From Caecitellus pseudoparvulus (lineage: Eukaryota; Protista; Bigyra: Bicosoecida), in assembly GCA_965644315.1 (NCBI GenBank), contig CBFFRQ010000205.1:1-16365 (forward strand): 16,365 bases of DNA, read 5' to 3'. Shown piece by piece: positions 290 through 16,365 of this stretch (within the stretch, counting starts at the first letter, position 1; every line of letters starts with the position of its first letter). The position numbers and the translations under genes are program-made. The notes below the pieces were generated by a model, which worked only from the letters and a program-made list of their open reading frames with translations, ran no database searches and had not been told where the DNA came from.

Positions 290-1672
290 CTAAGTCGATG
301 TCTGGGCGACCCGCAGCAACACCAAAGCCTTGTGCCCTTGTCGAGTGCTAGTACCGTGCCAGATGATGTCCTTGGTCGCTTGTATATCTTGGGAAGCGTG
401 CCTAAACTGCGGTGGGATAGCACGGTGTCCAGTCAGACCCAGCAGCTCTCGCACCACATCCACGTGCCTGTTTTGACAAGCAAGCCTGAAGCCAAACTCA
501 GGCTCACCCTCAGGCCCAGCATGCACATTCACTTCTCGATGCCCGGTCAAAGCCAGCAGCTCACGCACTACAGCCAAGTGCCCATACTTACAGGCAAGTC
601 GGAAGCCAGCCTCAGGCTTGCCATCAGGCCCAGCGTGCACATCCACCTCGCGATGCCCCGTGAGGGCCAGCAACTCTCGTACCACATCCAGGTGTCCATT
701 GCGACATGCCCATTGAAAGCCTTGCTCGGCCATGCCGCTGACTCCTGCATGTACGTCCACTGTCCGCTCGCCGCCCAACGCCAAAAGCTCACGCACAACA
801 GCCAAGTGCCCGTTCGCACAGGCAGCGATGAAGCCGAACTCAGGAGCGCCCTCAGGCCCTGCATGTACATCTACCTCGCGATGCCCGGTCAGCGCCAACA
901 GCTCACGCACCACGTCGATGTGCCCATGCTTACAAGCAAGCAGGAAGCCTTGCTCAGGATTGCCCTCAGGCCCAGCATGCACGTCCACCTCCCGATGCCC
1001 GGTCAGAGCCAACAGCTCACGCACCACACCAACATGGCCGTTCTCGCAAGCAACTCGAAAGCCAGCACCTTTACTGAAACTATCCCCAGCATGCACGTCC
1101 ACTTCTCGTTCACCTGTCAAAGCCAGAAGCTCACAAACCACATCTATATGTCCTCTCTGACACGCGACGCGGAAACTGCTTTCAAGATCACCATTGAATC
1201 CTGCATGCACATCCACTTCACGGTGTCCGGCTAGCGCCAGCAACTCGCGCACCACATCCACATGACCATTGTAGCAGGCAAATCGAAAGGCAGCCTCAGG
1301 ATCGTCAAGAAATCCTGCATGCACATCGACCTCGCGAGCACCGCTCAGAGCCAACAGCTCCCGCACCACATCAATGTGCCCATTCCGACAGGCAGCTCGG
1401 AAGCCATACTCAGGCCCTTCTTCATCCCCAGCATGCACATCCACTGCAAGCTCCCCCTCCAACGCCAGCAGCGCACGCACCAGCCCAACATGCCCAGTCT
1501 TGCAAGCCACCACAAAGCGAGCCGTTGTGTCAATGCTTGACAGGCCTCCCATCTCGGCACCCACACCATCACTACGCTCCTTCAGCATGCTCAGCAGCAC
1601 ATCTGCCTGCTCACCATTGCATGCGGCCTTCCATCGACCCACCAATGACTGACTGCCGCTGTCGTCCGTCAT
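290..1672 (-). CDS. Ankyrin-like repeat protein, copy 1 (460 aa; N-cap + 9 repeats + C-module)
   Basis: ORF 290..1837. Family homology begins at MTDDSGSQ (ATG at 1672, context CCACCACGCC-ATG). 38-aa repeats with ACxxGHxDVVRELL match the ankyrin helix-turn-helix. Confidence 0.85.
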   Translation of the reverse strand: MTDDSGSQSLVGRWKAACNGEQADVLLSMLKERSDGVGAEMGGLSSIDTTARFVVACKTGHVGLVRALLALEGELAVDVHAGDEEGPEYGFRAACRNGHIDVVRELLALSGAREVDVHAGFLDDPEAAFRFACYNGHVDVVRELLALAGHREVDVHAGFNGDLESSFRVACQRGHIDVVCELLALTGEREVDVHAGDSFSKGAGFRVACENGHVGVVRELLALTGHREVDVHAGPEGNPEQGFLLACKHGHIDVVRELLALTGHREVDVHAGPEGAPEFGFIAACANGHLAVVRELLALGGERTVDVHAGVSGMAEQGFQWACRNGHLDVVRELLALTGHREVDVHAGPDGKPEAGFRLACKYGHLAVVRELLALTGHREVNVHAGPEGEPEFGFRLACQNRHVDVVRELLGLTGHRAIPPQFRHASQDIQATKDIIWHGTSTRQGHKALVLLRVAQTST

Positions 1673-2231
1673 GGCGTGGTGGGAGGTTGCAGTTCCGCAA
1701 GTGCTTTCGCCAACCAACTCGCCTGCACAGCAGCACAGGCAGCACAACACAGAATCACAAGAGTAGCCAATATCCGATGTACAACGCAGATTGAAGGCTT
1801 GGGTCTTAATTTTGACGCAGTCGTCACAATGCCGCACCTACCTGGGCTGCATTGCTGCCTGACCCACGCCCATCCAAGCAAACGGGCGAAAAGCAAAGCG
1901 CGCCCAAGGCGAGCTGGGACGACCTCGCCCTGACGCCTCGCCCCATTGGCACGTCCACCACCCATACCAGTTCACTGCCAGACATGCGGAAATCGCTGCC
2001 TGCCTTGGAGTCCCGCACACTCCCCCGCTCCTCCCACACTTAGCTCCCAGCCGTACAAACCTCAGCTGCATTCTCCAGCTCCAGCACAAAGGTCATCCGA
2101 ATGCTGATCGTGATAGCGGCGGCTTGCACAGTGCAGCATGGTGCCCACACCTGTACTGCCCCTCAGTCAGTGCGTGGAGCCTTCCCTATTGAAGACACCA
2201 ACGCTGAACCAGTCTTTGATTTCAGATTTGC

Positions 2232-2936
2232 CTATTTCACAAAGGAGGACCGCAGCAGCAGCATGGCACTGCGGCCCTGCCGAGTGCTGGTGCCGTGCCA
2301 CACAGCATCTTTGGCCGGCTGCACAGCCACCTCGCCAGCGGCAAGTCGGGCCTGAAGAGGGACGGCTCGATGACCTGTGAGAGCCAGCAGCTCTCGAGCT
2401 ACATCATCATGCCCATTCTGGCAAGCACGCCAGAGGCCAGCCTCAGGCCTTCCCTCAGGACCCGCGTGCACGTCCACCTCGCGGTGCCCGGTCAGCGCCA
2501 GCAACTCACGCACTACATCCACGTGCCCATTCTGGCAAGCAGCTCTGAAGCCAGGTTCTGGATCACGCCTGCGCCTTGCATGCACGCTCACCTCGCGATG
2601 CCCTGTCAAAGCCAGCAACTCACGAACAACATCCACGTGTCCATTCATGCAGGCAAGCCAAAAGCCATACTCAGGCCCGAACCGGTCCCCTGCATGCACA
2701 TTTACAGCGATACCCCCCTCCAACGCCAACAGCGCACGCAGCAACTCAACGTGCCCTGTCTTGCAAGCCACCAGGAAGCCAGCCGTTGTGTCAGCGCTTG
2801 TCAAACCATCCAGATCCGCACCCACATAACCTACACTGCACCCCTCCAGCATGCTCAGCAGTACGTCTGCCTTCTGACTATCACATGCAGCCTTCCATCG
2901 CCCCACCATCGACTCCCCACTGCTGCCATCAGCCAT
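2232..2936 (-). CDS. Ankyrin-like repeat protein, copy 2 (234 aa; 3 repeats)
   Basis: ORF 2232..3152; start placed at the conserved MADG (ATG at 2936); same architecture. Confidence 0.85.
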   Translation of the reverse strand: MADGSSGESMVGRWKAACDSQKADVLLSMLEGCSVGYVGADLDGLTSADTTAGFLVACKTGHVELLRALLALEGGIAVNVHAGDRFGPEYGFWLACMNGHVDVVRELLALTGHREVSVHARRRRDPEPGFRAACQNGHVDVVRELLALTGHREVDVHAGPEGRPEAGLWRACQNGHDDVARELLALTGHRAVPLQARLAAGEVAVQPAKDAVWHGTSTRQGRSAMLLLRSSFVK

Positions 2937-2946
2937 GGCGTGGTGG
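2934..2946 (-). promoter_or_regulatory. Kozak-like initiation context CCACCACGCC-ATG (representative; present at all 10 visible starts)
   Basis: + strand CATGGCGTGGTGG at 1670, 2934, 4127, 5654, 7312, 9045, 10572, 11781, 12975 and 15090; purine at -3, and G at +4 in 9 of 10. Confidence 0.7.
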
Positions 2947-3071
2947 ATGCAGATTACGCACTTGATTCCCACGCAAACTACCTCGCCTGCACAGCGGCAA
3001 AGGAGGCTCAGCGCAGTATCTACATAGCTCCTGCACTCAAGTGTCCGTTGCGTGCTGAAGCAAGGTGTTGC

Positions 3072-3080
3072 TTTTGACAC
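3072..3080 (-). promoter_or_regulatory. Candidate cis-element GYGTCAAAA ~136 nt upstream of the ATG (representative)
   Basis: + strand TTTTGACRC at 1810, 3072, 4265, 7451, 15228 and equivalent sites; retained even in the diverged leaders of copies 1 and 5. Confidence 0.4.
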
Positions 3081-3298
3081 GCTCATGACAATGATGCCCC
3101 ATCTGCCCAGGCTACCATGCTGGCGCTCAGACCATAGCTCCCACCTCCACAAGGCTCAGGTGCAGTTCCTGCCTCTCGCACGCAGGTCATCCTCAGCCTG
3201 GCCGTGATGGTTGTCACATGTGCAGGGCAGCATACGACCCACACAAGGTCCGCTTCTGACTCTGTGCCTGGAGCCTCCACACCTGAGGCCAACAGCGG

Positions 3299-4129
3299 TT
3301 AGCCGGCCTGTGGCCACAGCCGTGTCTGCGCTGCTCGGGAAGCCCGCAGCAGCAGCATGGCCTGGCGACCCTGCCCAGTGCACGTGCCATACCAAATGGT
3401 ATCCTTGACCGCTTGCACGACTTGGGAAGCGTGCCTAAACTGCTGTGGGATAGCTCGATGCCCCTTCAGCGCCAGCAGCTCTCGCACCACAGCAACATGC
3501 CCATTCGCACAGGCAAGGCGGAAGCCAGCCTCAAGCTGTTCGTCCCACCCAGCGTGCACGTCCACTTCTCGATGCCCGCTCAGCGCCAACAGCTCACGCA
3601 CAACAGCCAAGTGTCCGTTCTCACAGGCAACCCTGAAGGCAGCCTCAGGACTACCCTTGAATGCGGCGTGGACATCCACCTCACGATGCCCACTCAAAGA
3701 CAGCAGCTCTTTGACTACATCTAAGTGCCCATAGCGACAGGCAACTCGGAAGCCAAGCTCAGGATTCCACTCATGCTCAACATGCACGTCCACCTCACGA
3801 GCACCGCCCAGTAGCAAAAGCTCACGAACCACCTCGACGTGCCCATAGCGACAGGCAAGCAAAAACCCATACTCAGCTGTCCCCCGAAATGCTACATGGA
3901 CGTCCACCTGACGATGGTCGCTAAAAATCAGCAGCCTCTGCAGCAGCCCAACATGCCCTGTCTTGCATGCGACCACAAAGCCAGCCGTTGTCTCATCGCT
4001 TGACAATCCTTCCAGACCCAGACCACCACCACAGCCCTCCAGCATGCTCAGCAGCACATCTGCCTGCTCCCCATCACATGCAGCCTTCCATCGACCCACC
4101 ACTGACTCACTCTCGCTGCCATCAGCCAT
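3299..4129 (-). CDS. Ankyrin-like repeat protein, copy 3 (276 aa; 4 repeats)
   Basis: ORF 3299..4345; conserved MADG start at 4129; near-identical to copy 9. Confidence 0.85.
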   Translation of the reverse strand: MADGSESESVVGRWKAACDGEQADVLLSMLEGCGGGLGLEGLSSDETTAGFVVACKTGHVGLLQRLLIFSDHRQVDVHVAFRGTAEYGFLLACRYGHVEVVRELLLLGGAREVDVHVEHEWNPELGFRVACRYGHLDVVKELLSLSGHREVDVHAAFKGSPEAAFRVACENGHLAVVRELLALSGHREVDVHAGWDEQLEAGFRLACANGHVAVVRELLALKGHRAIPQQFRHASQVVQAVKDTIWYGTCTGQGRQAMLLLRASRAAQTRLWPQAG

Positions 4130-5390
4130 GGCGTGGTGGGTGCAGTTTCCGCACTTGATTCCCACGCAAACTACCTCGCCGGCACAGCGGCAAAGGAGGC
4201 CCAGCGCAGTATCATCAAACCGCCTGTATTCCGCAATCCAGTACGTGCTGAAGCCAAGTGTTGCTTTTGACACGCTCATGACAATGATGCCCCATCTGCC
4301 CAGGCTACAGTGCTGGCGCCCAGGCCCCAGCTCCCACCTCCACAAGGATCAGGTGCATTCCCTGCCTCACACACGCTGGTCATCCCAAAGTTCGTCCATG
4401 ATAGGGACGGCTTGCACAGTGCGCCATGCGGCCCACACCAGCCTCGCCCCTCATTCAGAGCGTGGAGCCTTCCCTGCAGTAGACACGAATGATGCGCCAA
4501 CCTGCTACCTCGGCCGAATCTAGGCTGCCAACGACGCCCGCAGCATGAGCATTGTCTGGCGACCCTGCCGAGTGCTTGTGCCGTGCCAGAGGGCATCTCT
4601 GGCAGGCTGCACAGCCACCTCTCCAGCCTGAAGCCGCGCTTGGAGGGGGATGGCCCGATGCCCAGTGAGGCCAAGCAGCTCTCGGGCTATATCATAATGC
4701 CCATTCTGGCAGGCAAGCTGAAAGCCAGCCTCTGGTTTGCCCTCTGGCCCAGCATGCACATCCACCTCACGGTGCCCGGTCAAAGCCAGCAGCTCACGCA
4801 CCACCTCCGCATGGCCATTGTAACACGCAAATCGGAAGCCCCACTCCTGGTGAACGTGCACATCCACTTCACGGTGTCCGCTCAGCGTCAACAGCTCACG
4901 CACCACATCCACATGGCCATTTCGGCAGGCAAGCCGGAAGCCGAACTCAGGCATGCCGTTGGGCCCGACATGTACGTCCACCTCGCGATGCCCGGTCAAA
5001 GCCAGCAGCTCGCGCACAACATCAATGTGGCCACTCTGACAGGCAGACCAGAAGCCACACTCCCGATCAACGTGGACATCCACTTCACGATGCCCGGTCA
5101 GTGCCAGCAGCTCGCGCACCACAGCCACATGACCATTTGCACAGGCACGCCACAAGCCAGCCTCAGGCTTGCCGTCAGGCCCGGCATGCACGTCCACCTC
5201 ACGATGCCCCGTCAAAGCCAGCAGCTCGCGCACCACATCAATGTGTCCATTCTCACAGGCAAGTCGAAAACCAGCCTCAGGCGTGCCCATGTACGAAGCG
5301 TGCACATCAACCTCACGATGCCCGGTCAAAGCCAGCAGCTCCTGCACAACACCCAAATGCCCATTTCGACATGCAGTGCGGAAACCATAC
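4070..5390. repeat. Segmental duplicate of ~8988-10308 (offset 4918)
   Basis: ORF landmarks 4345/9263 and 4520/9438 share the offset, and the sequence is near-identical by eye; boundaries approximate. Confidence 0.85.
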
Positions 5391-5656
5391 CCAGGACTTC
5401 CGTTTCTCTTTGCATGCACATCTACAGCAAGACACCCTTCCAGTGCCAACAGCGCACGCAGCAGCCCAACATGCCCTGTCTTGCAAGCAACAACGAAGCC
5501 AGCCGTTGTGTCCTCGCTTGACAGTCCATCCACCTCCGCACCCACACCACCTCCACCACACCCCTCCAGCATGCTCAGCAGCATGCCTGCATCCTCGCCA
5601 TCACATGCAGCCTTCCATTGACCCACCACCGACTCCCCACTGCTGCCATCAGCCAT
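4520..5656 (-). CDS. Ankyrin-like repeat protein, copy 4 (378 aa; 7 repeats, two of them 34 aa)
   Basis: ORF 4520..5764; MADG start at 5656; repeats 2-7 near-identical to copy 7. Confidence 0.85.
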   Translation of the reverse strand: MADGSSGESVVGQWKAACDGEDAGMLLSMLEGCGGGGVGAEVDGLSSEDTTAGFVVACKTGHVGLLRALLALEGCLAVDVHAKRNGSPGYGFRTACRNGHLGVVQELLALTGHREVDVHASYMGTPEAGFRLACENGHIDVVRELLALTGHREVDVHAGPDGKPEAGLWRACANGHVAVVRELLALTGHREVDVHVDRECGFWSACQSGHIDVVRELLALTGHREVDVHVGPNGMPEFGFRLACRNGHVDVVRELLTLSGHREVDVHVHQEWGFRFACYNGHAEVVRELLALTGHREVDVHAGPEGKPEAGFQLACQNGHYDIARELLGLTGHRAIPLQARLQAGEVAVQPARDALWHGTSTRQGRQTMLMLRASLAA

Positions 5657-5973
5657 GGCGTGGTGGGTGCAGATTCCGCACTCCGCTATCTTCAACCAAC
5701 TCGCATCTACAACAGCACGAGCGACACTGCACAGCTTCGCTTGAGCAACTGCATTCTCATGCACGCTGTGTGCTGATGAAGTGGGCTGTTTTTTGCCACC
5801 GCCATCTCAATGCCCCATCTGCCCAGGCTGCAGTTCTGGCGCCCAGACCATAGCTCCCAACTCCACAAAGCCCAGGTGCATTCCCTGGCTCACACACGCT
5901 GGTCATCCCCAAGCCTGGCCATGGCCGTGGCAACTTGCACAGTGCACCATGAGGCCCAAACCAGCCTCGCCCC

Positions 5974-7314
5974 TCATTCAGAGCGTGCAGCCTTCCCTGA
6001 TGGAGACACCAACGCTGCGCCGGTCCGTGGCCGTGGACGCTTCCCTGCTCTCTTTGGGCTCCGCAGCAGCAACATGGCACGCCGCCCTGGTCGAGTGCTT
6101 GTGCCGTGCCAGACGGCATCTCTGGCTGCCTGCACAGCCACCTCGCCAGCCTCAAGGCGTGATTGCAGTGAGATGGCTCGATGGCCTGTAAGGCCCAGAA
6201 GTTCCCGCACCACATCCACGTGCCCATCACGACAGGCGTGTCGGAAGCCAGCCTCAGGCCCATTGAAATCCCAAGCATGCACGTCCACTTCACGGTGCCC
6301 GGTCAGCGCCAGAAGTTCGCGGACCACGTGCACGTGCCCCTCCCGGCAGGCAACCTGGAAGCTGGCTTCAGGCGTGCCAAGGCATGCAGCGTGCACATTC
6401 ACTGCACGATGCCCAGTCAGTGCCAGTAGCTCCCGCATCACGTCAAGGTGGCCATTTCCACAAGCATAACGGAAGCCAGTCTCAGACTCGCCCTCAAGCC
6501 CAACATGTACGTCAACCTCACGACGCCCAGTCAAAGCCAGCAGCTCACGCACCACGCCAATGTGCCCATTCTGGCAGGCATCTCGGAAGCCAGACTCAGC
6601 CCCAAACAGGTCCCCAGCATGCACATCCACCTCACGATGCCCCGTCAAAGCTAGCAGCTCACGCACAACATCAATGTGGCCATCACGACAGGCAAGTCGG
6701 AAGCCAGCCTCAGGCCCATCATCATCTCCAGCATGCACATCCACCTCACGATGCCCGGTCAAAGCTAGCAGCTCACGCACCACAGCCACATGACCATCAC
6801 GACAGGCACGTCGGAAGCCAGCCTCATGCCCACGCCAATCTTCTGCATGCACGTCCACCTCACGAGGCCCTGTCAGTGCCAGCAGCTCACGCACCACGTC
6901 AATGTGCCCGTTCTCGCAGGCTTCACGGAAGCCAGTCTCAGGCCAGCCATCAAGTTCTGCATGAACGTCCACCTCGCGATGCCCGCTCAATCCCAGCAGC
7001 TCCCGCACTACATCCACATGCCCGTTCTGGCAGGCAAGCCGAAAGCCATACTCAGATCCACTTTCATCTTCCGCATGTACGTTCACAGCAAGACCCCCGT
7101 CCAACGCTAGCAGCCCACGCAGTAATCCAACATGCCCCAGCCGGCAGGCAACCACAAACCCAGCTCTTGTATCGCCACCTGACAACCCTCCTAGCACCGT
7201 ACCAATATCAATGCCACGCTCCTGCAGTATATTCAGCAGTACATCTACCTGCTCACCATCGCATGCAGCCCTCCATCGCCCCGCCACGGAGTCTTTAGTG
7301 GTTGCACTAGCCAT
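5974..7314 (-). CDS. Ankyrin-like repeat protein, copy 5 (446 aa; 8 repeats; basic C-tail)
   Basis: ORF 5974..7401; start MASATT at 7314 in the same CCACCACGCC-ATG context. Confidence 0.85.
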   Translation of the reverse strand: MASATTKDSVAGRWRAACDGEQVDVLLNILQERGIDIGTVLGGLSGGDTRAGFVVACRLGHVGLLRGLLALDGGLAVNVHAEDESGSEYGFRLACQNGHVDVVRELLGLSGHREVDVHAELDGWPETGFREACENGHIDVVRELLALTGPREVDVHAEDWRGHEAGFRRACRDGHVAVVRELLALTGHREVDVHAGDDDGPEAGFRLACRDGHIDVVRELLALTGHREVDVHAGDLFGAESGFRDACQNGHIGVVRELLALTGRREVDVHVGLEGESETGFRYACGNGHLDVMRELLALTGHRAVNVHAACLGTPEASFQVACREGHVHVVRELLALTGHREVDVHAWDFNGPEAGFRHACRDGHVDVVRELLGLTGHRAISLQSRLEAGEVAVQAARDAVWHGTSTRPGRRAMLLLRSPKRAGKRPRPRTGAALVSPSGKAARSE

Positions 7315-8228
7315 GGCGTGGTGGGGGTAACAGTTCCGCAATTGCTGCCGCCAGCTCACTCGCCTGCAAACCGGCACAGGCGGCACGGCACAGTACCTCA
7401 AAAGTTGCTGGTGTCCAATGTCCCATGAGCGCTGATGAAATGGGAGTTAGTTTTGACGCAGCTATGTATATGTTGCACCCCCCTGACCTGCACTGCTGCC
7501 TGGCTCGCTCACGCCCATCCATGCTAACGGACTCAAGCACAGCGCTTGTATGGCGTGCTGGGTCGGCCTCGCGTGTCCCCCCTACCTCACCGGGACCCCC
7601 AACAACCACACAAATGCACCTTCGACCACGATAGCGTCGCCGCCCGTCTAGAAGACCTGCATGCTCCCCGCTTCGCGAGCAACTGCACACCATGGCAGGC
7701 TCCGAGCCGAGGGTGTGGCGGTGCACGGGCTCCCCACCCTCGCCACCAGTTCAGACCGCTCCAAGCATCCCTCCTATCCCTTATTACAGGGTCCCCACTT
7801 GCCCCAACATGTCCACCACGCGCAATGCTCACAGTAATCAGGGCCGCCACAAGATCTGCCTCCGCGTCCGCCGCCACACCGCCGCCACCAAGCAGGCACT
7901 CCTGACTATCCTCCGCCCGCTGCAGGTTGGGTGACCTGTGGAAGATGACGAGGTCAACCAGATCCGCCACCACCCCCAGCCGCCTCGCCACGGACCTGGC
8001 ACGCTGTCGGTGCAAAAGTCCAAGTTTCAAGGGCTGGCGCTCAAGTGCCACCTCCAAACCATGCACGCCTCAGCTGCACTAACACATTGGTCATACGCAA
8101 GATAACCGTGGTGGTAAAAACCAGCACGGTGCAGCATGAAGTACAAGCCTGCTCCGCCCCTCACTCAGAGCGTGGAGCCTTCCCTGCAACAGACACCAAC
8201 GCTGAGCCGGCCTGTGGCAAAAAAGCGC

Positions 8229-9047
8229 CTATGCTGCCACGAAGGTTCGCAGCAGCAGCACGATATTGCGACCTTGCCGAGTGCTGGTGCCATGCCAGAC
8301 AGCATCCTTGGCCGGCTGCACAGCCACCTCGCCAGCAGCAAGGCGAGCTTGGAGGGGGGTGGCTCGATGGCCAGTGAGGCCCAGCAGCTCCACCAGCACA
8401 CTAACATGGCCTCGAAAGCAAGCATACCGGAAGCCAGCCTCAGGATCCCCCTCAAAGTCTGCGTGTACATCCACCTCACGATCGCCTGTCAGGGCCAGCA
8501 ACTCTCGAATGACGTCCACGTGACCAGCATCGCACGTCGCCTGAAACGCAGCCTCAGGGATGCCCCATGGCCCCCCATTCACGTCCACAGTACGATCACC
8601 GCCTAACGCAAGCAGCTCACGCACCACCTCCAAATGCCCGTTCTGGCACGCAAGCTGGAAGCTGTACTCAGGATCGCCCTCAGGCCCCGCGTGCACATCC
8701 ACCGTTCTTTCACCGCTCAGAGCCAGCAGCTCCCGAACCACTTCCACGTGGCCGTTGGCACAGGCTCGTTGGAAACCATACTCAGGAGAGTCCCAAAAGA
8801 CTGCATGCACATCCACAGCAAGCTCCCCCCCCAACGCCAGCAGCCTCTGCAGCAGCTCAACATGCCCAGTCTTGCATGCGACCACAAAGCCAGCCGTTGT
8901 CTCCTTGCTTGACAGTCCATCCACCCCCGCACCCACATCACCTCCACCACACCCCTCCAGCATGCTCAGCAGCATGCCTGCATCCTCCCCATCACATGCA
9001 GCCTTCCATCGACCCACCACTGACTCACTCTCGCTGCCATCAGCCAT
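8229..9047 (-). CDS. Ankyrin-like repeat protein, copy 6 (272 aa; 4 repeats)
   Basis: ORF 8229..9263; MADG start at 9047; repeats near-identical to copy 8. Confidence 0.85.
   Translation of the reverse strand: MADGSESESVVGRWKAACDGEDAGMLLSMLEGCGGGDVGAGVDGLSSKETTAGFVVACKTGHVELLQRLLALGGELAVDVHAVFWDSPEYGFQRACANGHVEVVRELLALSGERTVDVHAGPEGDPEYSFQLACQNGHLEVVRELLALGGDRTVDVNGGPWGIPEAAFQATCDAGHVDVIRELLALTGDREVDVHADFEGDPEAGFRYACFRGHVSVLVELLGLTGHRATPLQARLAAGEVAVQPAKDAVWHGTSTRQGRNIVLLLRTFVAA
8275..8785. repeat. Duplicate of ~11011-11521 (offset 2736)
   Basis: Repeat regions of copies 6 and 8 are near-identical; boundaries approximate. Confidence 0.8.
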
Positions 9048-9437
9048 GGCGTGGTGGGTCCAGTTTCCGCACTTGATTCCCACGCAAGCCACCTCGCCGG
9101 CACAGCGGCAAAGGAGGCCCAGCGCAGTATCATCAAACCGCCTGTATTCCGCAATCCAGTACGTGCTGAAGCCAAGTGTTGCTTTTGACACGCTCATGAC
9201 AATGATGCCCCATCTGCCCAGGCTACAGTGCTGGCGCTCAGACCTTAGCTCCCACCTCCACAAGGATCAGGTGCATTCCCTGCCTCACACACGCTGGTCA
9301 TCCCAAAGTTCGTCCATGATAGGGACGGCTTGCACAGTGCGCCATGCGGCCCACACCAGCCTCGCCCCTCATTCAGAGCGTGGAGCCTTCCCTGCAGTAG
9401 ACACGAATGATGCGCCAACCTGCTACCTCGGCCGAAT

Positions 9438-10574
9438 CTAGGCTGCCAACGACGCCCGCAGCATGAGCATTGTCTGGCGACCCTGTCGAGTGCACGTGCC
9501 ATGCCAGGCGGCGTCTTTGGCAGCCTGCACAGCCACCTCTCCAGCCTGAAGCCGCGCTTGGAGGGGGATGGCCCGATGCCCAGTGAGGCCAAGCAGCTCT
9601 CGGGCTATATCATAATGCCCATTCTGGCAGGCAAGCTGAAAGCCAGCCTCTGGTTTGCCCTCTGGCCCAGCATGCACATCCACCTCACGGTGCCCGCTCA
9701 ATGCCAGCAGCTCACGCACCACCTCCGCATGGCCATTGTAACACGCAAATCGGAAGCCCCACTCCTGGTGAACGTGCACATCCACTTCACGGTGTCCGCT
9801 CAGCGTCAACAGCTCACGCACCATATCCACATGGCCATTTCGGCAGGCAAGCCGGAAGCCGAACTCAGGCATGCCGTTGGGCCCGACATGTACGTCCACC
9901 TCGCGATGCCCGGTCAAAGCCAGCAGCTCGCGCACAACATCAATGTGGCCACTCTGACAGGCAGACCAGAAGCCACACTCCCTATCAACGTGGACATCCA
10001 CCTCACGATGCCCAGTCAAGGCCAGCAGCTCGCGCACCACAGCCACATGACCATTTGCACAGGCACGCCACAAGCCAGCCTCAGGCTTGCCTCCAGGCCC
10101 GGCATGCACGTCCACCTCACGATGCCCCGTCAAAGCCAGCAGCTCGCGCACCACATCAATGTGTCCATTCTCACAGGCAAGTCGAAAACCAGCCTCAGGC
10201 CTGCTCGTGTACGAAGCGTGCACATCGACCTCGCGATGACCGGTCAAAGCCAACAGCTCCCGAACAACACCTAAATGCCCATTTCGACATGCAGTGCGGA
10301 AGCCATACTCAGGCCCACTCCGGTCCTCTACATGCACATCTACAGCAAGACCCCCCTCCAGTGCCAGCAGCCCACGTAGCAGCTCAACATGCCCTGTCTT
10401 GCAAGCAACAACGAAGCCAGCCGTTGTCTCATCGCTTGTCAATCCTCCCAGATCCACACCCACATCACCTCCAATGCACCCCTCCAGCATGCTCAGCAGC
10501 ACGCCTGCATCCTCGCCATCACATGCAGCCTTCCATTGACCCACCACCGACTCCCCATTGCTGCCATCAGCCAT
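9438..10574 (-). CDS. Ankyrin-like repeat protein, copy 7 (378 aa; 7 repeats)
   Basis: ORF 9438..10790; MADG start at 10574. Confidence 0.85.
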   Translation of the reverse strand: MADGSNGESVVGQWKAACDGEDAGVLLSMLEGCIGGDVGVDLGGLTSDETTAGFVVACKTGHVELLRGLLALEGGLAVDVHVEDRSGPEYGFRTACRNGHLGVVRELLALTGHREVDVHASYTSRPEAGFRLACENGHIDVVRELLALTGHREVDVHAGPGGKPEAGLWRACANGHVAVVRELLALTGHREVDVHVDRECGFWSACQSGHIDVVRELLALTGHREVDVHVGPNGMPEFGFRLACRNGHVDMVRELLTLSGHREVDVHVHQEWGFRFACYNGHAEVVRELLALSGHREVDVHAGPEGKPEAGFQLACQNGHYDIARELLGLTGHRAIPLQARLQAGEVAVQAAKDAAWHGTCTRQGRQTMLMLRASLAA

Positions 10575-10964
10575 GGCGTGGTGGATGCAGTTTCCGCACT
10601 TGATTCCCACGCAAACCAACTCGCCGGCACAGCGGCAAAGGAGGCTCAGCGCAGTATCTGCATAGCTCCTGCACTCAAGTGTCCGTTGCGTGCTGAAGCA
10701 AGGTGTTGCTTTTGGCACCCTCATGACTCTGATGCCCCATCTGCCCAGGCTGCAGTGCTGGCGCTCAGGCCCCAGCTCCCAACTCCACAAGGCTCACGCG
10801 CATTTCCTGCCTCACGCACGCAGGCCATCCCCTCGCCTGACCATGATGGTGCCACCTTGTGAAGGTCAGCATGCGGCCCACACCAGCCTCGCCCCTCATT
10901 CAGAGCGTGGAGCCTTCCCTGCTGGAGACACGAATGATGCGCCGACCTGCTACCTCGGCCGTAT

Positions 10965-11783
10965 CTAGGCTGCCAACGACGCCCGCAGCATGAGCATTGT
11001 CTGGCGACCCTGCCGAGTGCTGGTGCCGTGCCACACAGCATCCTTGGCCGGCTGCACAGCCACAAGGCCAGCATCAAGGCGGGCCTGCAGCGGGATGGTT
11101 CGATGCCCAGTGAGGCCCAGCAGCTCCACCAGCACACTAACATGGCCTCGAAAGCAAGCATACCGGAAGCCAGCCTCAGGATCCCCCTCAAAGTCTGCGT
11201 GCACATCCACCTCACGATCGCCTGTCAGGGCCAGCAACTCTCGAATGACGTCCACGTGACCAGAATCGCACGTCGCCTGAAACGCAGCCTCAGGGATGCC
11301 CCACGGCCCCCCATTCACGTCCACAGTACGATCACCGCCCAAAGCAAGCAGCTCACGCACCACCTCCAAATGCCCGTTCTGGCACGCAAGCTGGAAGCTG
11401 TACTCAGGATCGCCCTCAGGCCCCGCGTGCACATCTACCGTTCTTTCACCGCTCAGAGCCAGCAACTCCCGAACCACTTCCACGTGGCCGTTCGCACAGG
11501 CTCGTTGGAAACCATACTCAGCAATTCCCCGAAATGTCACATGCACATCCACAGCAAGACCCCCTTCCAGTGCCAACAGCCCACGTAGCAGCCCAACATG
11601 CCCCATCTTGCAAGCCACCACAAAGCCAGCCGTTGTCTCATCGCTTGTCAATCCATCCACCTCCGCACCCACATCACCTCCACCACACCCCTCCAGCATG
11701 CTCATCAGCACGCCTGCATCCTCGCCATCACATGCAGCCTTCCATCGACCCACCACCGACTCCCCATTGCTGCCATCAGCCAT
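10965..11783 (-). CDS. Ankyrin-like repeat protein, copy 8 (272 aa; 4 repeats)
   Basis: ORF 10965..11999; MADG start at 11783. Confidence 0.85.
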   Translation of the reverse strand: MADGSNGESVVGRWKAACDGEDAGVLMSMLEGCGGGDVGAEVDGLTSDETTAGFVVACKMGHVGLLRGLLALEGGLAVDVHVTFRGIAEYGFQRACANGHVEVVRELLALSGERTVDVHAGPEGDPEYSFQLACQNGHLEVVRELLALGGDRTVDVNGGPWGIPEAAFQATCDSGHVDVIRELLALTGDREVDVHADFEGDPEAGFRYACFRGHVSVLVELLGLTGHRTIPLQARLDAGLVAVQPAKDAVWHGTSTRQGRQTMLMLRASLAA

Positions 11784-12146
11784 GGCGTGGTGGATGCAGT
11801 TTCCGCACTTGATTCCCACGCAAACCAACTCGCCTGCACAGCGGCAAAGGAGGCTCAGCGCAGTATCTGCATAGCTCCTGCACTCAAGTGTCCGTTGCGT
11901 GCTGAAGCAAGGTGTTGCTTTTGACACCCTCATGACTCTGATGCCCCATCTGCCCAGGCTGCAGTGCTGGCGCTCAGGCCCCAGCTCCCAACTCCACAAG
12001 TCTCAGCTGCATTCCCTGCCTCACACACGCTGGCCACCTCCGAGCTTGGCCGTGATGGTTGTGACATGTGCAGGGCAGCATGCGGCCCACACAAGGTCCG
12101 CTTCTTACTCTGTGCCTGGAGCCTCCACACCTGAGGCCACCAGCGG

Positions 12147-12977
12147 TTAGCTGGTCTGTGGCCACAGCCGTGTCTGTGCTGCTCGGGAAGCCCGCAGCAG
12201 CAGCATGGCCTGGCGACCCTGCCCAGTGCACGTGCCATACCAAATGGCATCCTTGACCGCTTGCACGACTTGGGAAGCGTGCCTAAACTGCGGTGGGATG
12301 GCTCGATGCCCAGTAAGAGCCAGCAGCTCACGCACAACATCAACATGCCCATTCGCACAGGCAAGGCGGAAGCCAGCCTCAGGCTTTCCGCCCCAGCCAG
12401 CATGCACGTCCACTTCTCGATGCCCTTCCAGCGCCAACAGCTCACGCACAACAGCCAAGTGTCCGTTCTCACAGGCAACCCTGAAGGCAGCCTCAGGATT
12501 GCCCTTGAATGCGGCGTGGACATCCACCTCACGATGCCCACTCAAAGACAGCAGCTCTTCGACTACATCTAAGTGCCCGTAGCGACAGGCAGCTCGGAAG
12601 CCAAGCTCAGGATTCCACTCAGGCTCAACATGCACGTCCACCTCACGAGCACCGCTCAGTAACATTAGCTCATGAACCACCTCGGCGTGCCCATAGCGAC
12701 AGGCAAGCAAAAACCCATACTCAGCTGTCCCCCGAAATGCTACATGGACGTCCACCTGACGATGGTCGCTAAAAATCAGCAGCCTCTGCAGCAGCCCAAC
12801 ATGCCCTGTCTTGCATGCGACCACAAAGCCAGCCGTTGTCTCATCGCTTGACAATCCTTCCAGACCCAGACCACCACCACAGCCCTCCAGCATGCTCAGC
12901 AGCACATCTGCCTGCTCCCCATCACATGCAGCCTTCCATCGACCCACCACTGACTCACTCTCGCTGCCATCAGCCAT
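12147..12977 (-). CDS. Ankyrin-like repeat protein, copy 9 (276 aa; 4 repeats)
   Basis: ORF 12147..13193; MADG start at 12977. Confidence 0.85.
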   Translation of the reverse strand: MADGSESESVVGRWKAACDGEQADVLLSMLEGCGGGLGLEGLSSDETTAGFVVACKTGHVGLLQRLLIFSDHRQVDVHVAFRGTAEYGFLLACRYGHAEVVHELMLLSGAREVDVHVEPEWNPELGFRAACRYGHLDVVEELLSLSGHREVDVHAAFKGNPEAAFRVACENGHLAVVRELLALEGHREVDVHAGWGGKPEAGFRLACANGHVDVVRELLALTGHRAIPPQFRHASQVVQAVKDAIWYGTCTGQGRQAMLLLRASRAAQTRLWPQTS

Positions 12978-13286
12978 GGCGTGGTGGGTGCAGTTTCCGC
13001 ACTTGATTCCCACGCAAACTACCTCGCCGGCACAGCGGCAAAGGAGGCCCAGCGCAGTATCATCAAACCGCCTGTATTCCGCAATCCAGTACGTGCTGAA
13101 GCCAAGTGTTGCTTTTGACACGCTCATGACAATGATGCCCCATCTGCCCAGGCTACAGTGCTGGCGCCCAGGCCCCAGCTCCCACCTCCACAAAGCCCAG
13201 GTGCATTCCCTGGCTCACACACGCTGGCCATCCCCAAGCCTGGCAAAGGCCGTGGCAACTTGCGTGGTGCAGTGTGGAGCCCACAC

Positions 13287-15092
13287 CTACACCGCCTCTC
13301 GGTCAGAGCGTGCAGCCTTCCCTGCTGGAGACACCAACACTGAGCCGGACTGTGGCCGTGGACGCTTCCCTGCTCTCTTTGCGCTTCGCAGCAGCACCAC
13401 AGCCATACGCCCCCGTCGATTGTTGGTGCCGGCCCACACAGCATCCTTACCCGGCTGGACAGCTGCCTCTCCAGCCTGAAGGCGTGCTTCAAGGGGGATA
13501 GCTCGATGGCCGGTGAGGCTCAACAGCTCACGCACCACATCGGCATTTCCGTGTTCGCAAGCTCGAAAGAAGCCAGACTCAGCCCCATACAGGTCCCCCG
13601 CATGCACATCCACCTCACGGCGCCCATCCAACGCCAGCAGCTCCCGCACCACGTCTAGATGTCCGTTCCCACAGGCCAACCGAAAGCCACCCTCAGGCCC
13701 GCCCTCAGCCCCAGCATGCACATCCACCTCACGGCGCCCGCTCAACGCCAGCAGCTCCCGCACCACGTCTAGATGTCCGTTCCCACAGGCGAGCTGGAAG
13801 CCGGCCTCAGGCCCGCCCTCAGCTCCAGCATGGACATCCACCTCGCGGTCACCCGTCAGAGCCAGTAGCTCACGCACAACCTCAAGGTGCCCAGTCGCAC
13901 AAGCAGCCTGGAGGCAAGCCTCCTGGCGAGCGTGCACGTCAACGGCACGATGTCCGCTCAGCGCCAGTAGCTCACGCACCACATCGACATGTCCATTCTC
14001 ACAGGCAAGCCAGAAGCCATAATCAGCTCCTTCCTCAGGCCCAGCATGCACATTCACCTTGCGATGCCCACTCAACGACAGCAACTCGCGCACTACATCC
14101 AAGTGACCATTCTCACAGGCAAGCCAGAAGCCGGCCTCAGGCACGCCCCCAGCTCCAGCATGCACATCCACCTCACGATGCCCGGTCAAAGTCAGCAGCT
14201 CACGCACCACCTCCACGTGTCCGTTCTTACAGGCAAGCCCGAAACCTTGCTCAGGCTCGCCCTCACGCCCAGCATGCACATCCACCTCGCGATGCCCGGT
14301 CAAAGCCAGCAGCTCACGCACAACATCAATGTGACCTTTCGCACAGGCCATTCGGAAGCCACCTTCAGGAACACCCTGAGAACCAGCATGCACATCCACC
14401 GCACGGTCACCCGTCAACGCCAGCAGCTCGCGCACCACATCCAACTTACCATGCATGCAGGCAAGCCGGAAGCAATACTCAGGCTGCCCCTCAGGCCCAG
14501 CATGTACGTCCACTTCCCGAGCACCACTCAGTGCCAGCAGCTCTCTCACTACATCGGTGTGCCCCATCGTACAAGCGATTCGAAGGCCATGCTCAGGGAT
14601 ACCCTCAGACCCAGCATGAACATTCACTTGTCGATGCCCTCTCAGCGCCAACAGCTCGCGCACCACATCCACATGCCCGTTCTGACAAGCGAACCTGAAG
14701 GCATACTCAGAATCGCCCTCACGCCCTGCATGCCCAGCATGCACGTCTATTTCACGAGGCCCGGCTAGAGCCAGGAGCTCGCGAACCACTTTCACGTGTC
14801 CATTCATGCAGGCAAGTTGAAAGCAATAATCAGGCCTGCCCTCGGGCCCAGCGTGCACATCCACCGCGTGATCTCCAGTCAGAGCCAACAGCCCGCGCAG
14901 CAAATCGACGTGCCCGGTCTTGCAAGCCACCACGAAGCCACCAGTTGCGTCGTAACTTGACAAACCTCCCAGCTCCGGCCCAACACCACCATAACACTCC
15001 TGTAGCATGCTCATCAGTACGTCTGCCTGCTCACTGTCACATGCAGCCCTCCATCGACCCATCACTGACTCCCTGTCGCTGCCATCAGCCAT
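13287..15092 (-). CDS. Ankyrin-like repeat protein, copy 10 (601 aa; 12 repeats; basic C-tail)
   Basis: ORF 13287..15242; MADG start at 15092; includes one 41-aa and one 34-aa repeat. Confidence 0.85.
   Translation of the reverse strand: MADGSDRESVMGRWRAACDSEQADVLMSMLQECYGGVGPELGGLSSYDATGGFVVACKTGHVDLLRGLLALTGDHAVDVHAGPEGRPDYCFQLACMNGHVKVVRELLALAGPREIDVHAGHAGREGDSEYAFRFACQNGHVDVVRELLALRGHRQVNVHAGSEGIPEHGLRIACTMGHTDVVRELLALSGAREVDVHAGPEGQPEYCFRLACMHGKLDVVRELLALTGDRAVDVHAGSQGVPEGGFRMACAKGHIDVVRELLALTGHREVDVHAGREGEPEQGFGLACKNGHVEVVRELLTLTGHREVDVHAGAGGVPEAGFWLACENGHLDVVRELLSLSGHRKVNVHAGPEEGADYGFWLACENGHVDVVRELLALSGHRAVDVHARQEACLQAACATGHLEVVRELLALTGDREVDVHAGAEGGPEAGFQLACGNGHLDVVRELLALSGRREVDVHAGAEGGPEGGFRLACGNGHLDVVRELLALDGRREVDVHAGDLYGAESGFFRACEHGNADVVRELLSLTGHRAIPLEARLQAGEAAVQPGKDAVWAGTNNRRGRMAVVLLRSAKRAGKRPRPQSGSVLVSPAGKAARSDREAV
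13601..13828. repeat. Recent 2 x 114-nt tandem duplication inside copy 10
   Basis: 13601-13714 and 13715-13828 share private synonymous features such as ACGTCTAGATGTCCGTTCCCACAGGC. Confidence 0.85.
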
Positions 15093-15413
15093 GGCGTGGT
15101 GGAACCAGATTCCGCACTTGCCACCCTCGCAAGCCACCTCGCCTGCGCAGCAGCAAAAGAGACTCAGCGCAGTATCATCAGACCGCCTGTATTCCACCAT
15201 CCAATACGTTCTGAAGCCGGGTGTTGCTTTTGACACGCTCATGACTCTGATGCCCCATCTGCCCAGGCTGCAGTGCTGGCGCTCAGGCCCCAGCTCCCAA
15301 CTCCATGAGGCTCACGTGCATTCCCTGACTCACGCATGCTGGCCACATCCGAGCCTGGCCATGGCCGTGGCGACTTGCGTGGTGCGGCATGAAGTACGAA
15401 CCTGCTCCGCCCC

Positions 15414-16365
15414 TCACTCAGAGCGTGGAGCCTTCCCTGCAACAGACACGAATGATGCGCCGGTCTGTTGCCAAAGAAGTTTCTGGGCTGCTCGGGAAGC
15501 CCGCAGCAGCAGCATGGGACCTCGCCCTTGCCGAGTGCTGGTGCCGTGCCAGACAGCATCCTTGGCCGGCTGCACTGCGACAAGCCCAGCATCAAGGCGT
15601 GATTGCAGCGGGATGGCTCGATGCCCAGTGAGGCCCAGTAGCTCCACCAACACACTAGCATGGTCATTCTTGCAGGCGTACCGAAAACTGGCCTCGGGAT
15701 CGCCACAACATGCCGCATGCACATCGAGCTCGCGATGTCCGGTCAACGCCAATAGCTCACGCACGACATCGGTGTGCCCCCTGCGACAGGCGCGCCAGAG
15801 AGCAGACTGAGGCCTGTCCTCAGGCCCAGCATGCACGTCAACCTCACGATGTCCGCTCAACGCAAGGAGCTCTCGAACCACCTCCACATGCCCGTTCGCA
15901 CAGGCATACTCGAAGCCAGACTGAGGCCCTGCTCGACCCCTCGAATGCACATCCACCTCGCGATGCCCCGTCAGTGCCAGCAGCTCGCGTACCACAGCCA
16001 CATGACCATTACGACAGGCATATCGGAAGCCAGCCTCTGGCTTACCACCCCATCTAGCATGCACGTCCACCTCACGATGCCCCGTCAGCGACAGCAGCTC
16101 GCGCACAACAGCCAAGTGTCCATGCTCGCAGGCAACTCTGAAGCCAGGCTCAGGATCGCGCCTGTGCCTTGCATGCACGTCCACCTCGCGATGCCCGGTA
16201 AGAGCCAGCAACTCACGAACCACTTCCACGTGGCCGTTCTGGCATGCAAGCCAGAAGCCATACTCAGGCCCACTCCGGTCCTCTACATGCACATCTACAG
16301 CAAGACCCCCCTCCAGCGCCAACAGCCCACGCAGCAGCCCAACATGCCCCGTCTTGCAAGCCACC
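15414..16365 (-). CDS. Ankyrin-like repeat protein, copy 11 (5'-partial; 6 repeats)
   Basis: ORF runs off the right edge within the N-cap (VACKTGH); the track's first M is an artefact of the window edge. Confidence 0.85.
   Translation of the reverse strand, partial: VACKTGHVGLLRGLLALEGGLAVDVHVEDRSGPEYGFWLACQNGHVEVVRELLALTGHREVDVHARHRRDPEPGFRVACEHGHLAVVRELLSLTGHREVDVHARWGGKPEAGFRYACRNGHVAVVRELLALTGHREVDVHSRGRAGPQSGFEYACANGHVEVVRELLALSGHREVDVHAGPEDRPQSALWRACRRGHTDVVRELLALTGHRELDVHAACCGDPEASFRYACKNDHASVLVELLGLTGHRAIPLQSRLDAGLVAVQPAKDAVWHGTSTRQGRGPMLLLRASRAAQKLLWQQTGASFVSVAGKAPRSE

Follow-up and report, generated by a model that had tools for sequence, protein, structure and literature searches.

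An ankyrin-repeat gene array in the protist Caecitellus pseudoparvulus that looks like a binder repertoire with a constant C-terminal tail

Natural protein families in which one rigid repeat framework bears many different binding faces provide the starting material for innate recognition systems and served as the template for engineered binders. In the engineered DARPins, an N-cap is followed by repeats of identical framework and by a C-terminal cap region; the unit has 33 residues and carries a TPLH motif. The columns that are randomised in DARPins are the least conserved ones in natural ankyrin repeats, and thus variability at these columns is expected by default. The outer helix of ankyrin repeats is normally variable. 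Among the natural systems, the ASB proteins (PF07525, BC box and Cul5 box) and the ankyrin-PRANC receptors of poxviruses and giant viruses (PF09372) form large paralogous sets in which a variable ankyrin array precedes a short constant C-terminal module. This module, which needs its partner in order to fold, docks on a ubiquitin-ligase core common to the set. The ankyrin families of poxviruses and mimiviruses are host-range or counter-defence factors. In giant viruses such as the mimiviruses and Bodo saltans virus, tandem intronless ankyrin genes expand by duplication, and the latter reportedly carries large ankyrin arrays at its genome termini. The fungal HNWD/NLR proteins combine an N-terminal effector and a NACHT/NB-ARC NTPase with similar repeats that differ at few binding-face positions and vary in number. 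Concerted evolution keeps their repeats nearly identical in nucleotide sequence.

The window, that is, the whole stretch of 16,365 nucleotides analysed here, is an entire 16.4-kb contig from the 30.6-Mb genome of a marine protist. It contains 11 intronless ankyrin genes which are arranged head-to-tail, all on the minus strand:

290..1672, minus strand: g1, 460 aa, N-cap, 9 repeats and short C-module; a divergent member
2232..2936, minus strand: g2, 234 aa, N-cap, 3 repeats and a 48-aa C-terminal region; the protein used for modelling
2235..2372, minus strand: example of the C-module, 46 aa (g2 residues 189-234), without Pfam match and with low pLDDT
2937..3298, minus strand: example of a spacer of the conserved 310-390 bp class, 3′ flank of g3 and 5′ flank of g2
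3299..4129, minus strand: g3, 276 aa, 4 repeats; near-duplicate of g9
4520..5656, minus strand: g4, 378 aa, 7 repeats, two of them 34 aa long; near-duplicate of g7
5974..7314, minus strand: g5, 446 aa, 8 repeats; C-terminal region of the long form (71 aa), which includes a basic NLS-like stretch
7315..8228, minus strand: long spacer variant, 914 bp, with extra DNA partly similar to spacers of other ankyrin arrays
8229..9047, minus strand: g6, 272 aa, 4 repeats; near-duplicate of g8
9438..10574, minus strand: g7, 378 aa, 7 repeats; near-duplicate of g4
10965..11783, minus strand: g8, 272 aa, 4 repeats; near-duplicate of g6
12147..12977, minus strand: g9, 276 aa, 4 repeats; near-duplicate of g3
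13287..15092, minus strand: g10, 601 aa, 12 repeats (one of 41 aa, one of 34 aa); long C-terminal form
15414..16364, minus strand: g11, 316 aa visible, 6 repeats, long C-terminal form; N-cap lost at the contig end

A first-pass annotation had described 11 intact genes with an N-cap, a varying number of repeats and a C-module. With helix 2 as anchor we recovered exactly the repeat numbers that it had given for g1 to g11 (9, 3, 4, 7, 8, 4, 7, 4, 4, 12 and 6; 68 in total). The number of genes also stands; g11, however, is not intact as its 5′ end is cut off by the end of the contig. The repeat regions of the 11 genes are free of stops and frameshifts, as had been claimed. Three near-duplicate pairs (g4/g7, g6/g8 and g3/g9) are separated by a pS of only about 0.09, and the 11 genes therefore represent about eight independent gene types.

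The ankyrin nature of the proteins is evident from Pfam, where Ank_2 matches with 75-166 bits (E = 6e-21 to 3e-49) against a cutoff of 27.3, and where Ank, Ank_3 and Ank_4 likewise exceed their cutoffs. The N-terminal 70 residues, the N-cap, are two degenerate ankyrin repeats. An AF2 model of g2 shows a confident ankyrin stack with paired helices in each repeat (pLDDT 80-97). With this model Foldseek found 95 matches in the PDB with E no higher than 1e-3. The top ones are DARPins with a TM score of about 0.7 by target, and DARPins or further proteins with ankyrin repeats make up nearly all of the best 50 of the 95. This bears out the DARPin-like fold that had been proposed. The view that these are stand-alone proteins agrees with our searches too: Pfam found only ankyrin domains in the window proteins and no NACHT/NB-ARC, TIR, death-fold or other signalling domain, and neither a signal peptide or hydrophobic N-terminus nor a TM-like segment outside the ankyrin helices was found.

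The repeats of the window differ from those of DARPins in length, as 62 of the 68 units have 38 residues (34 residues in five, 41 in one) and the finger loop is five residues longer. Per-column entropy over the 68 repeats separates a framework, which is fixed to about 0.3 bit or less at G2, V6, V8, H9, A26, C27, G30, H31, V34, E37, L38, L39 and L41 (0.43 bit at F23), from columns with 1.9-3.4 bits. The latter are the loop columns 11, 12, 16 and 18, column 21 (the residue after E), columns 24 and 25 (the two residues preceding A-C) and columns 28 and 29 (the two following C), in agreement with the positions that the annotation had listed as variable on a nearly fixed scaffold. The pattern is unchanged across 494 repeats from 68 open reading frames of the family, collected from 21 stretches (the window and 20 further loci). 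In both sets the outer helix is fixed, which again distinguishes this natural family from DARPins. In the Pfam Ank register the two residues after the A-C pair fall on the positions 13 and 14 that are randomised in DARPins. The TPLH motif is replaced by G-F-x-x-A-C, and therefore the canonical framework positions T6, H9 and L10 are variable here as well. As predicted, the variable columns belong to the finger loop and to the side of helix 1 that is exposed; their placement on the concave face is based on helical periodicity and the Pfam/DARPin register, not on measured geometry. Among 460 distinct repeats we count 383 different 7-residue signatures. Each variable column has its own restricted spectrum of polar and partly aromatic residues; relative to base composition E, N, D, Q and Y are enriched and G, R, S and C depleted.

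The family is lineage-restricted, large and multigenic with at least 80-150 ankyrin-repeat proteins, found on dozens of host contigs and in part inside contigs of several hundred kb. The framework is common to all 68 reading frames mentioned above and the C-module to 59 of them, while the number of repeat copies per gene ranges from 3 to 46. Searching this genome gave 81 matches to the N-cap and at least 150 to the C-module, of which only two have internal stops. Public relatives all stem from DNA metagenomes, and near-identical orthologues of g1 were not found among public proteins.

How old are the repeats? Silent sites between them are saturated (pS about 0.6), while pN of the framework is 0.14 and its omega 0.07-0.10. 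The framework is thus kept by purifying selection and not by recent homogenisation as in the fungal NLR repeats; the C-module is under purifying selection as well. The parallel to the HNWD/NLR domains, which the annotation had drawn, therefore fails at the DNA level, where the repeats are only 60-78% identical. In each repeat, seven to ten positions can change almost freely. Variable sites change at 0.6-1.1 times the silent rate and never clearly above it in four designs, which compared the three duplicate pairs of the window, nearest-neighbour repeats chosen by total distance, nearest-neighbour repeats chosen by framework distance, and five gene pairs in positional alignment. Across the designs omega was 0.66 (CI 0.54-0.80), 0.79 (0.70-0.88), 0.60 (0.30-0.92) and about 0.8-0.9. 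No class-wide omega above 1, and hence no positive selection, was detected in these designs, in contrast to what is seen at the hypervariable positions of the fungal repeats; the sole higher value is one noisy within-class estimate (1.1-1.4). Lack of constraint on the surface would therefore account for the variability equally well. One pair of orthologues (pS 0.10) shows overall conservation of the repeat region, with a pN/pS of about 0.15 and, by eye, just two changes at variable-type positions. As the repeats are old and positive selection is not detectable, the look of a DARPin library is by itself no evidence of an arms race.

The last repeat is followed by a tail which, unlike the cap region of DARPins, is not ankyrin. 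This C-module has 46 residues with 16 nearly invariant columns, and in some members a basic NLS-like tail comes after it. Three C-terminal segments had no Pfam match at E up to 10, including SOCS box, F-box and PRANC, and a PDB sequence search with the module gave no significant match. The likeness to ASB and PRANC proteins is therefore one of design only and the family belongs to neither. Among 1.84 billion public proteins the C-module is present in only 14 cluster representatives, one of them a protein of 906 aa whose N-terminal region differs. Protein atlas features reached a maximum of 0.79, which is within noise, and a language-model neighbour scored 0.75, below the meaningful range. The pLDDT of the module is low in two AF2 models; in the second, which covered the last two repeats and the tail and used 32 sequences, the tail scored 31-53. 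It is thus predicted to be unstructured. In the short-tail genes the terminal TAG precedes 22 further in-frame codons. Over this stretch pN/pS is 1.01 (10 genes), so that we regard it as a decaying remnant and reject stop-codon readthrough at the TAG.

With its fixed framework and variable face the gene array looks like a binder repertoire. We suggest, with a probability of roughly 0.55, that the family is a repertoire of soluble intracellular binders which a constant tail joins to a shared partner. Each gene product would consist of the N-cap with its two degenerate repeats, a series of consensus-like 38-residue repeats and the constant C-module. Ligands, probably proteins, would differ from paralogue to paralogue and be bound on the concave face, and the invariant tail would probably dock every member onto one common partner or pathway, with the family acting as interchangeable adaptors. 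This probable docking role is suggested by the conservation of the C-module together with the prediction that it does not fold by itself. A more specific version, in our view rather improbable, is that the tail is an undescribed docking or degron-type module. It would plug more than 150 different ankyrin binders into a single effector machine such as a ubiquitin ligase or an antiviral signalling hub, and these binders would include long receptors like P0075 as well as stand-alone proteins of the type described here. This would amount to combinatorial intracellular recognition in which ankyrin repeats take the place of LRR, WD or immunoglobulin domains. For a genome of 30 Mb the family is very large, and its regularity is unusual; as its tail is constant and without known relatives, identification of the partner would reveal the purpose of the whole family.

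Should the repertoire be one of immune or allorecognition receptors, detection of viral or non-self proteins would fall to the paralogues, and the tail would set off a response. A large clustered family with variable surface and polymorphic repeat number would fit, as would relatives of the same repeat type on contigs labelled viral metagenome. We nevertheless consider it unlikely: omega at the variable sites is not clearly above 1, the one orthologue pair has a conserved repeat region with two variable-type changes, signalling domains are absent, and the repeats are old at silent sites. Moreover, PADLOC searches with the whole proteins g2, g10 and P0075 gave no match for g2 or P0075 and for g10 only the candidate family PDC-M72A (E = 4.9e-10). 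The near-neutral omega speaks instead for an ordinary expanded scaffold family without repertoire function, whose exposed residues drift and merely display the generic variability of ankyrin repeats at the columns chosen for DARPins. This explanation is doubtful to a similar degree, because drift does not readily explain residue spectra that are restricted and specific for each column, open frames kept in almost all of at least 150 copies, an outer helix that is fixed, or so few changes at variable-type positions in the one informative orthologue pair.

A giant-virus origin or exchange, by which host-range or counter-defence factors now reside in the host genome, appears very improbable. Tandem arrays of intronless genes and the terminal arrays of Bodo saltans virus are in its favour, as is the 41-45% identity to P0025 and P0049, two proteins filed under 'viral metagenome' in UniRef. 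These two lie on one common 179-kb contig, and on the two shorter contigs that we examined (79.5 and 42 kb) P0025 is found among ORFans near the end. The metagenomic viral proteins have the same D-V-H-A / A-C-x-x-G-H / V-V-R-E-L-L-A-L repeat type. However, the specific N-cap and C-module were not seen in them and only a short basic C-terminal end is shared. Furthermore, the family occupies dozens of loci in a cellular genome, also within contigs of several hundred kb, GC is uniform across the window at 57-63%, and viral hallmark genes were not found in the window. A binder repertoire whose tail would dock onto a shared partner remains our preferred reading.

Isolates differ in the array: on a collinear contig from a metagenome the g2 orthologue has four repeats instead of the three in the window, and a converted N-cap is seen. 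Nucleotide identity is 83-100% in the 5′ flank and N-cap versus 60-78% in the repeat DNA. The family turns over by tandem duplication, by gain and loss of whole repeats and by gene conversion that affects the 5′ flank and N-cap in patches. The 914-bp spacer matched no RNA family in Rfam and is not a transposon; its similarity to spacers of other arrays is only partial. About 35 nt upstream of the ATG are mostly conserved between the spacers, and the final 10 nt before the ATG, CCCACCACGCC, are invariant in all 10 of 10 spacers.

Stop-to-stop translation of the window, which is the entire contig C205 (16,365 bp) of a 30.6 Mb genome in 215 contigs, yields 11 long frames on the minus strand. Ten of them open with a conserved methionine of the M-A-D-G-S type, preceded by the invariant context C-C-A-C-C-A-C-G-C-C. 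Some genes have an in-frame extension upstream of this methionine, but g1, g4 and g5 have none, and the conserved methionine is therefore the likely start codon. The first-pass annotation listed 11 intact genes. Eleven frames are indeed present, but g11 (15414-16364) is truncated by the contig end, and three gene pairs arose by recent duplication (g4/g7, g6/g8 and g3/g9; pS about 0.09), which leaves about eight independent gene types in the array. The GC content is 57-63% across the whole window, and the strong and constant GC skew fits minus-strand coding. Open reading frames on the plus strand were rejected as genes, being antisense frames of GC-rich repeat DNA. Ankyrin models are the sole Pfam matches of the window proteins and lie far over the cutoffs. 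The one PADLOC match of g10 (13287-15092) covers residues 249-423 and is to PDC-M72A, a candidate defence family (E 4.9e-10); it falls within the ankyrin repeats and may be mere repeat similarity.

Anchoring on helix 2, we count 9, 3, 4, 7, 8, 4, 7, 4, 4, 12 and 6 repeats in g1 to g11, which matches exactly the 68 repeats read from the sequence before. The repeats are 38 aa long in 62 cases, 34 aa in five and 41 aa in one. According to the column entropies G2, V6, V8, H9, F23, A26, C27, G30, H31, V34, E37, L38, L39 and L41 are near-invariant, and the variable columns are 11, 12, 16 and 18 in the loop, 21 after the glutamate, 24 and 25 before A-C, and 28 and 29 after the cysteine. The same two classes recur family-wide, in 68 ORFs from 21 genome stretches that together supplied 494 repeats of 38 aa; the proposed near-fixed scaffold with its variable positions is thus borne out in the window and in the family. 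Giant members on contig C54 with 46 repeats (L010:1759-7359, a 1867-aa open frame) and 29 repeats (L012:5080-8661, 1194 aa) keep the same N-cap, the roughly 70 residues before the repeats, and the same C-module, the constant tail.

The AF2 model of g2 (2232-2936; mean pLDDT 78) has two confident helices per repeat and two further helix pairs in the N-terminal 70 residues, which makes the N-cap two degenerate ankyrin repeats. The best PDB fold matches of this model are DARPins. In the Pfam Ank register the A-C pair aligns with the canonical A-A, which places the two variable residues after the cysteine at DARPin positions 13 and 14. Positions 33, 1, 2 and 3 of DARPins are the counterparts of the loop columns, in a loop that is five residues longer here. 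Columns 21, 24 and 25 are variable, whereas the equivalent T6, H9 and L10 are framework in canonical ankyrins. In helix 1 the fixed residues are spaced i, i+3, i+4, i+7 with the variable residues on the opposite face; this surface placement derives solely from register and periodicity. Unusually, the outer helix (V-V-R-E-L-L-A-L) is fixed too.

Silent sites are saturated between repeats (pS about 0.6; framework pN 0.14) and the repeat DNA is merely 60-78% identical. This makes the repeats old and means that purifying selection on the protein, not recent homogenisation, maintains the framework. Since recent homogenisation defines the repeats of fungal HNWD/NLR proteins, the suggested parallel to these does not hold at the DNA level. 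Four designs measured the rate of change at seven codons of each repeat, those that vary most. Omega is about 0.8-0.9 in the three window duplicate pairs, 0.66 (CI 0.54-0.80) in 128 nearest-neighbour repeat pairs by total distance, a design biased downward, and 0.79 (CI 0.70-0.88) in 156 pairs for whose choice only framework codons counted and for which silent change was taken from the other codons; a noisy within-class estimate for the same 156 pairs is 1.1-1.4. Five independent gene pairs aligned by position give 0.60 (CI 0.30-0.92), with no single variable column above about 1.1. For the framework, omega is 0.07-0.10 in the designs that span the family; the three pairs from the window give about 0.25.

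Every complete gene carries after its last repeat the 46-residue C-module (alignment A3). Sixteen of its columns are near-invariant; among them are W-x-G-T-S-T-R-x-G-R and, at the end, a hydrophobic-basic stretch. The module has no Pfam match at E up to 10 and no match among PDB sequences, and two models, one of them from a 32-sequence alignment, give it a pLDDT of 31-53. The genome holds at least 150 copies, only 2 of them with stops, and 81 occurrences of the window-type N-cap. Among 1.84 billion cluster representatives a profile search detected the module in only 14 proteins; those common to both searches all come from ENA metagenome assemblies, and the three inspected contigs belong to one metagenome sample series. 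In one of these metagenome proteins (P0075, 906 aa) a 640-residue non-ankyrin N-terminal region without Pfam match precedes the same repeats and C-module. As the module is conserved, lineage-specific and predicted not to fold alone, we suggest that it could be a partner-dependent docking motif.

In about a quarter of the members a basic extension of 23 residues follows, which contains the NLS-like stretch K-R-x-R-K-R-P-R-P. The majority end before it; in the window's clade they do so at a TAG that stands opposite Gln, Gly or Arg in the alignment with the long-tail genes, and 22 codons beyond this TAG remain in frame to the old TGA:

2166-2234, minus strand, in-frame stretch after the TAG
4451-4522, minus strand, in-frame stretch after the TAG
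9369-9440, minus strand, in-frame stretch after the TAG
10896-10967, minus strand, in-frame stretch after the TAG

The pN/pS of the post-TAG stretch is 1.01 (10 paralogues) versus 0.72 for the intact extension. We therefore reject stop-codon readthrough and regard the hidden tail as a decaying remnant.

That the proteins matter is shown by purifying selection and intact frames. The evidence best supports reading the family as a repertoire of soluble, intracellular ankyrin binders with one shared tail-dependent partner: the variable face of each protein would bind a ligand, and the constant tail would dock the members on the shared partner. Literature searches gave no description of this family. 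An immune role of the repertoire is possible; the usual signatures of such a role are absent. Neutral drift on an exposed surface is a rival account of the variable sites, which evolve at 6-10 times the framework rate, yet not above the silent rate. Residue use at these sites is non-random, each column having a distinct spectrum in which E, N, D, Q, K and Y are over-represented, and 460 distinct repeats show 383 distinct signatures. More distant relatives keep the repeat type, and at the C-terminus they have only a short basic end in common with the family; two of them are labelled viral metagenome. The spread of the family over many host contigs makes a viral origin unlikely.

Among paralogues with only 60-78% identity in their repeat DNA, the 5′ flank and N-cap reach 83-100%, and one pair of copies has 100% identity over 300 nt. 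The copies compared are:

2818-3128, minus strand, 5′ flank and N-cap
4011-4321, minus strand, 5′ flank and N-cap
8929-9239, minus strand, 5′ flank and N-cap
10456-10766, minus strand, 5′ flank and N-cap
11665-11975, minus strand, 5′ flank and N-cap
12859-13169, minus strand, 5′ flank and N-cap
14974-15284, minus strand, 5′ flank and N-cap

The entire spacer also aligns well among paralogues. Either gene conversion or constraint is indicated for the flanks; homogenisation appears to act on them and not on the repeats. A block of about 35 nt just 5′ of every start codon (e.g. 2937-2971) is kept in 10 of 10 spacers, the two divergent ones included, and does not vary at all in its final 10 nt (CCCACCACGCC). 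The block is a candidate for a core promoter, an initiator or a 5′-UTR element of the family. The spacer at 7315-8228 measures 914 bp instead of the usual 310-390 bp; no RNA family was called in it, and its extra roughly 550 bp have only partial similarity, to array spacers on contigs C54 and C157.

Compared across isolates, as the first-pass annotation had proposed, the array is not invariant. A metagenome contig from another isolate (L009:1-2564, ENA ERZ23499031) is collinear with window 4581-2131, that is g4 (3′ end)-g3-g2. Its g3 orthologue has repeats identical at all variable sites, and its N-cap is replaced, converted from another paralogue (pS 0.21 versus 0.01 elsewhere). The g2 orthologue has four repeats instead of three through an exact 114-nt extra repeat, and one change at a variable site. 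At another locus a second orthologue pair (L031 and L029) differs by pS 0.10; its repeats show only 5 non-synonymous changes, of which about 2 hit variable-type positions. These few changes, small in number, hint that the surface of each paralogue may be conserved once established.
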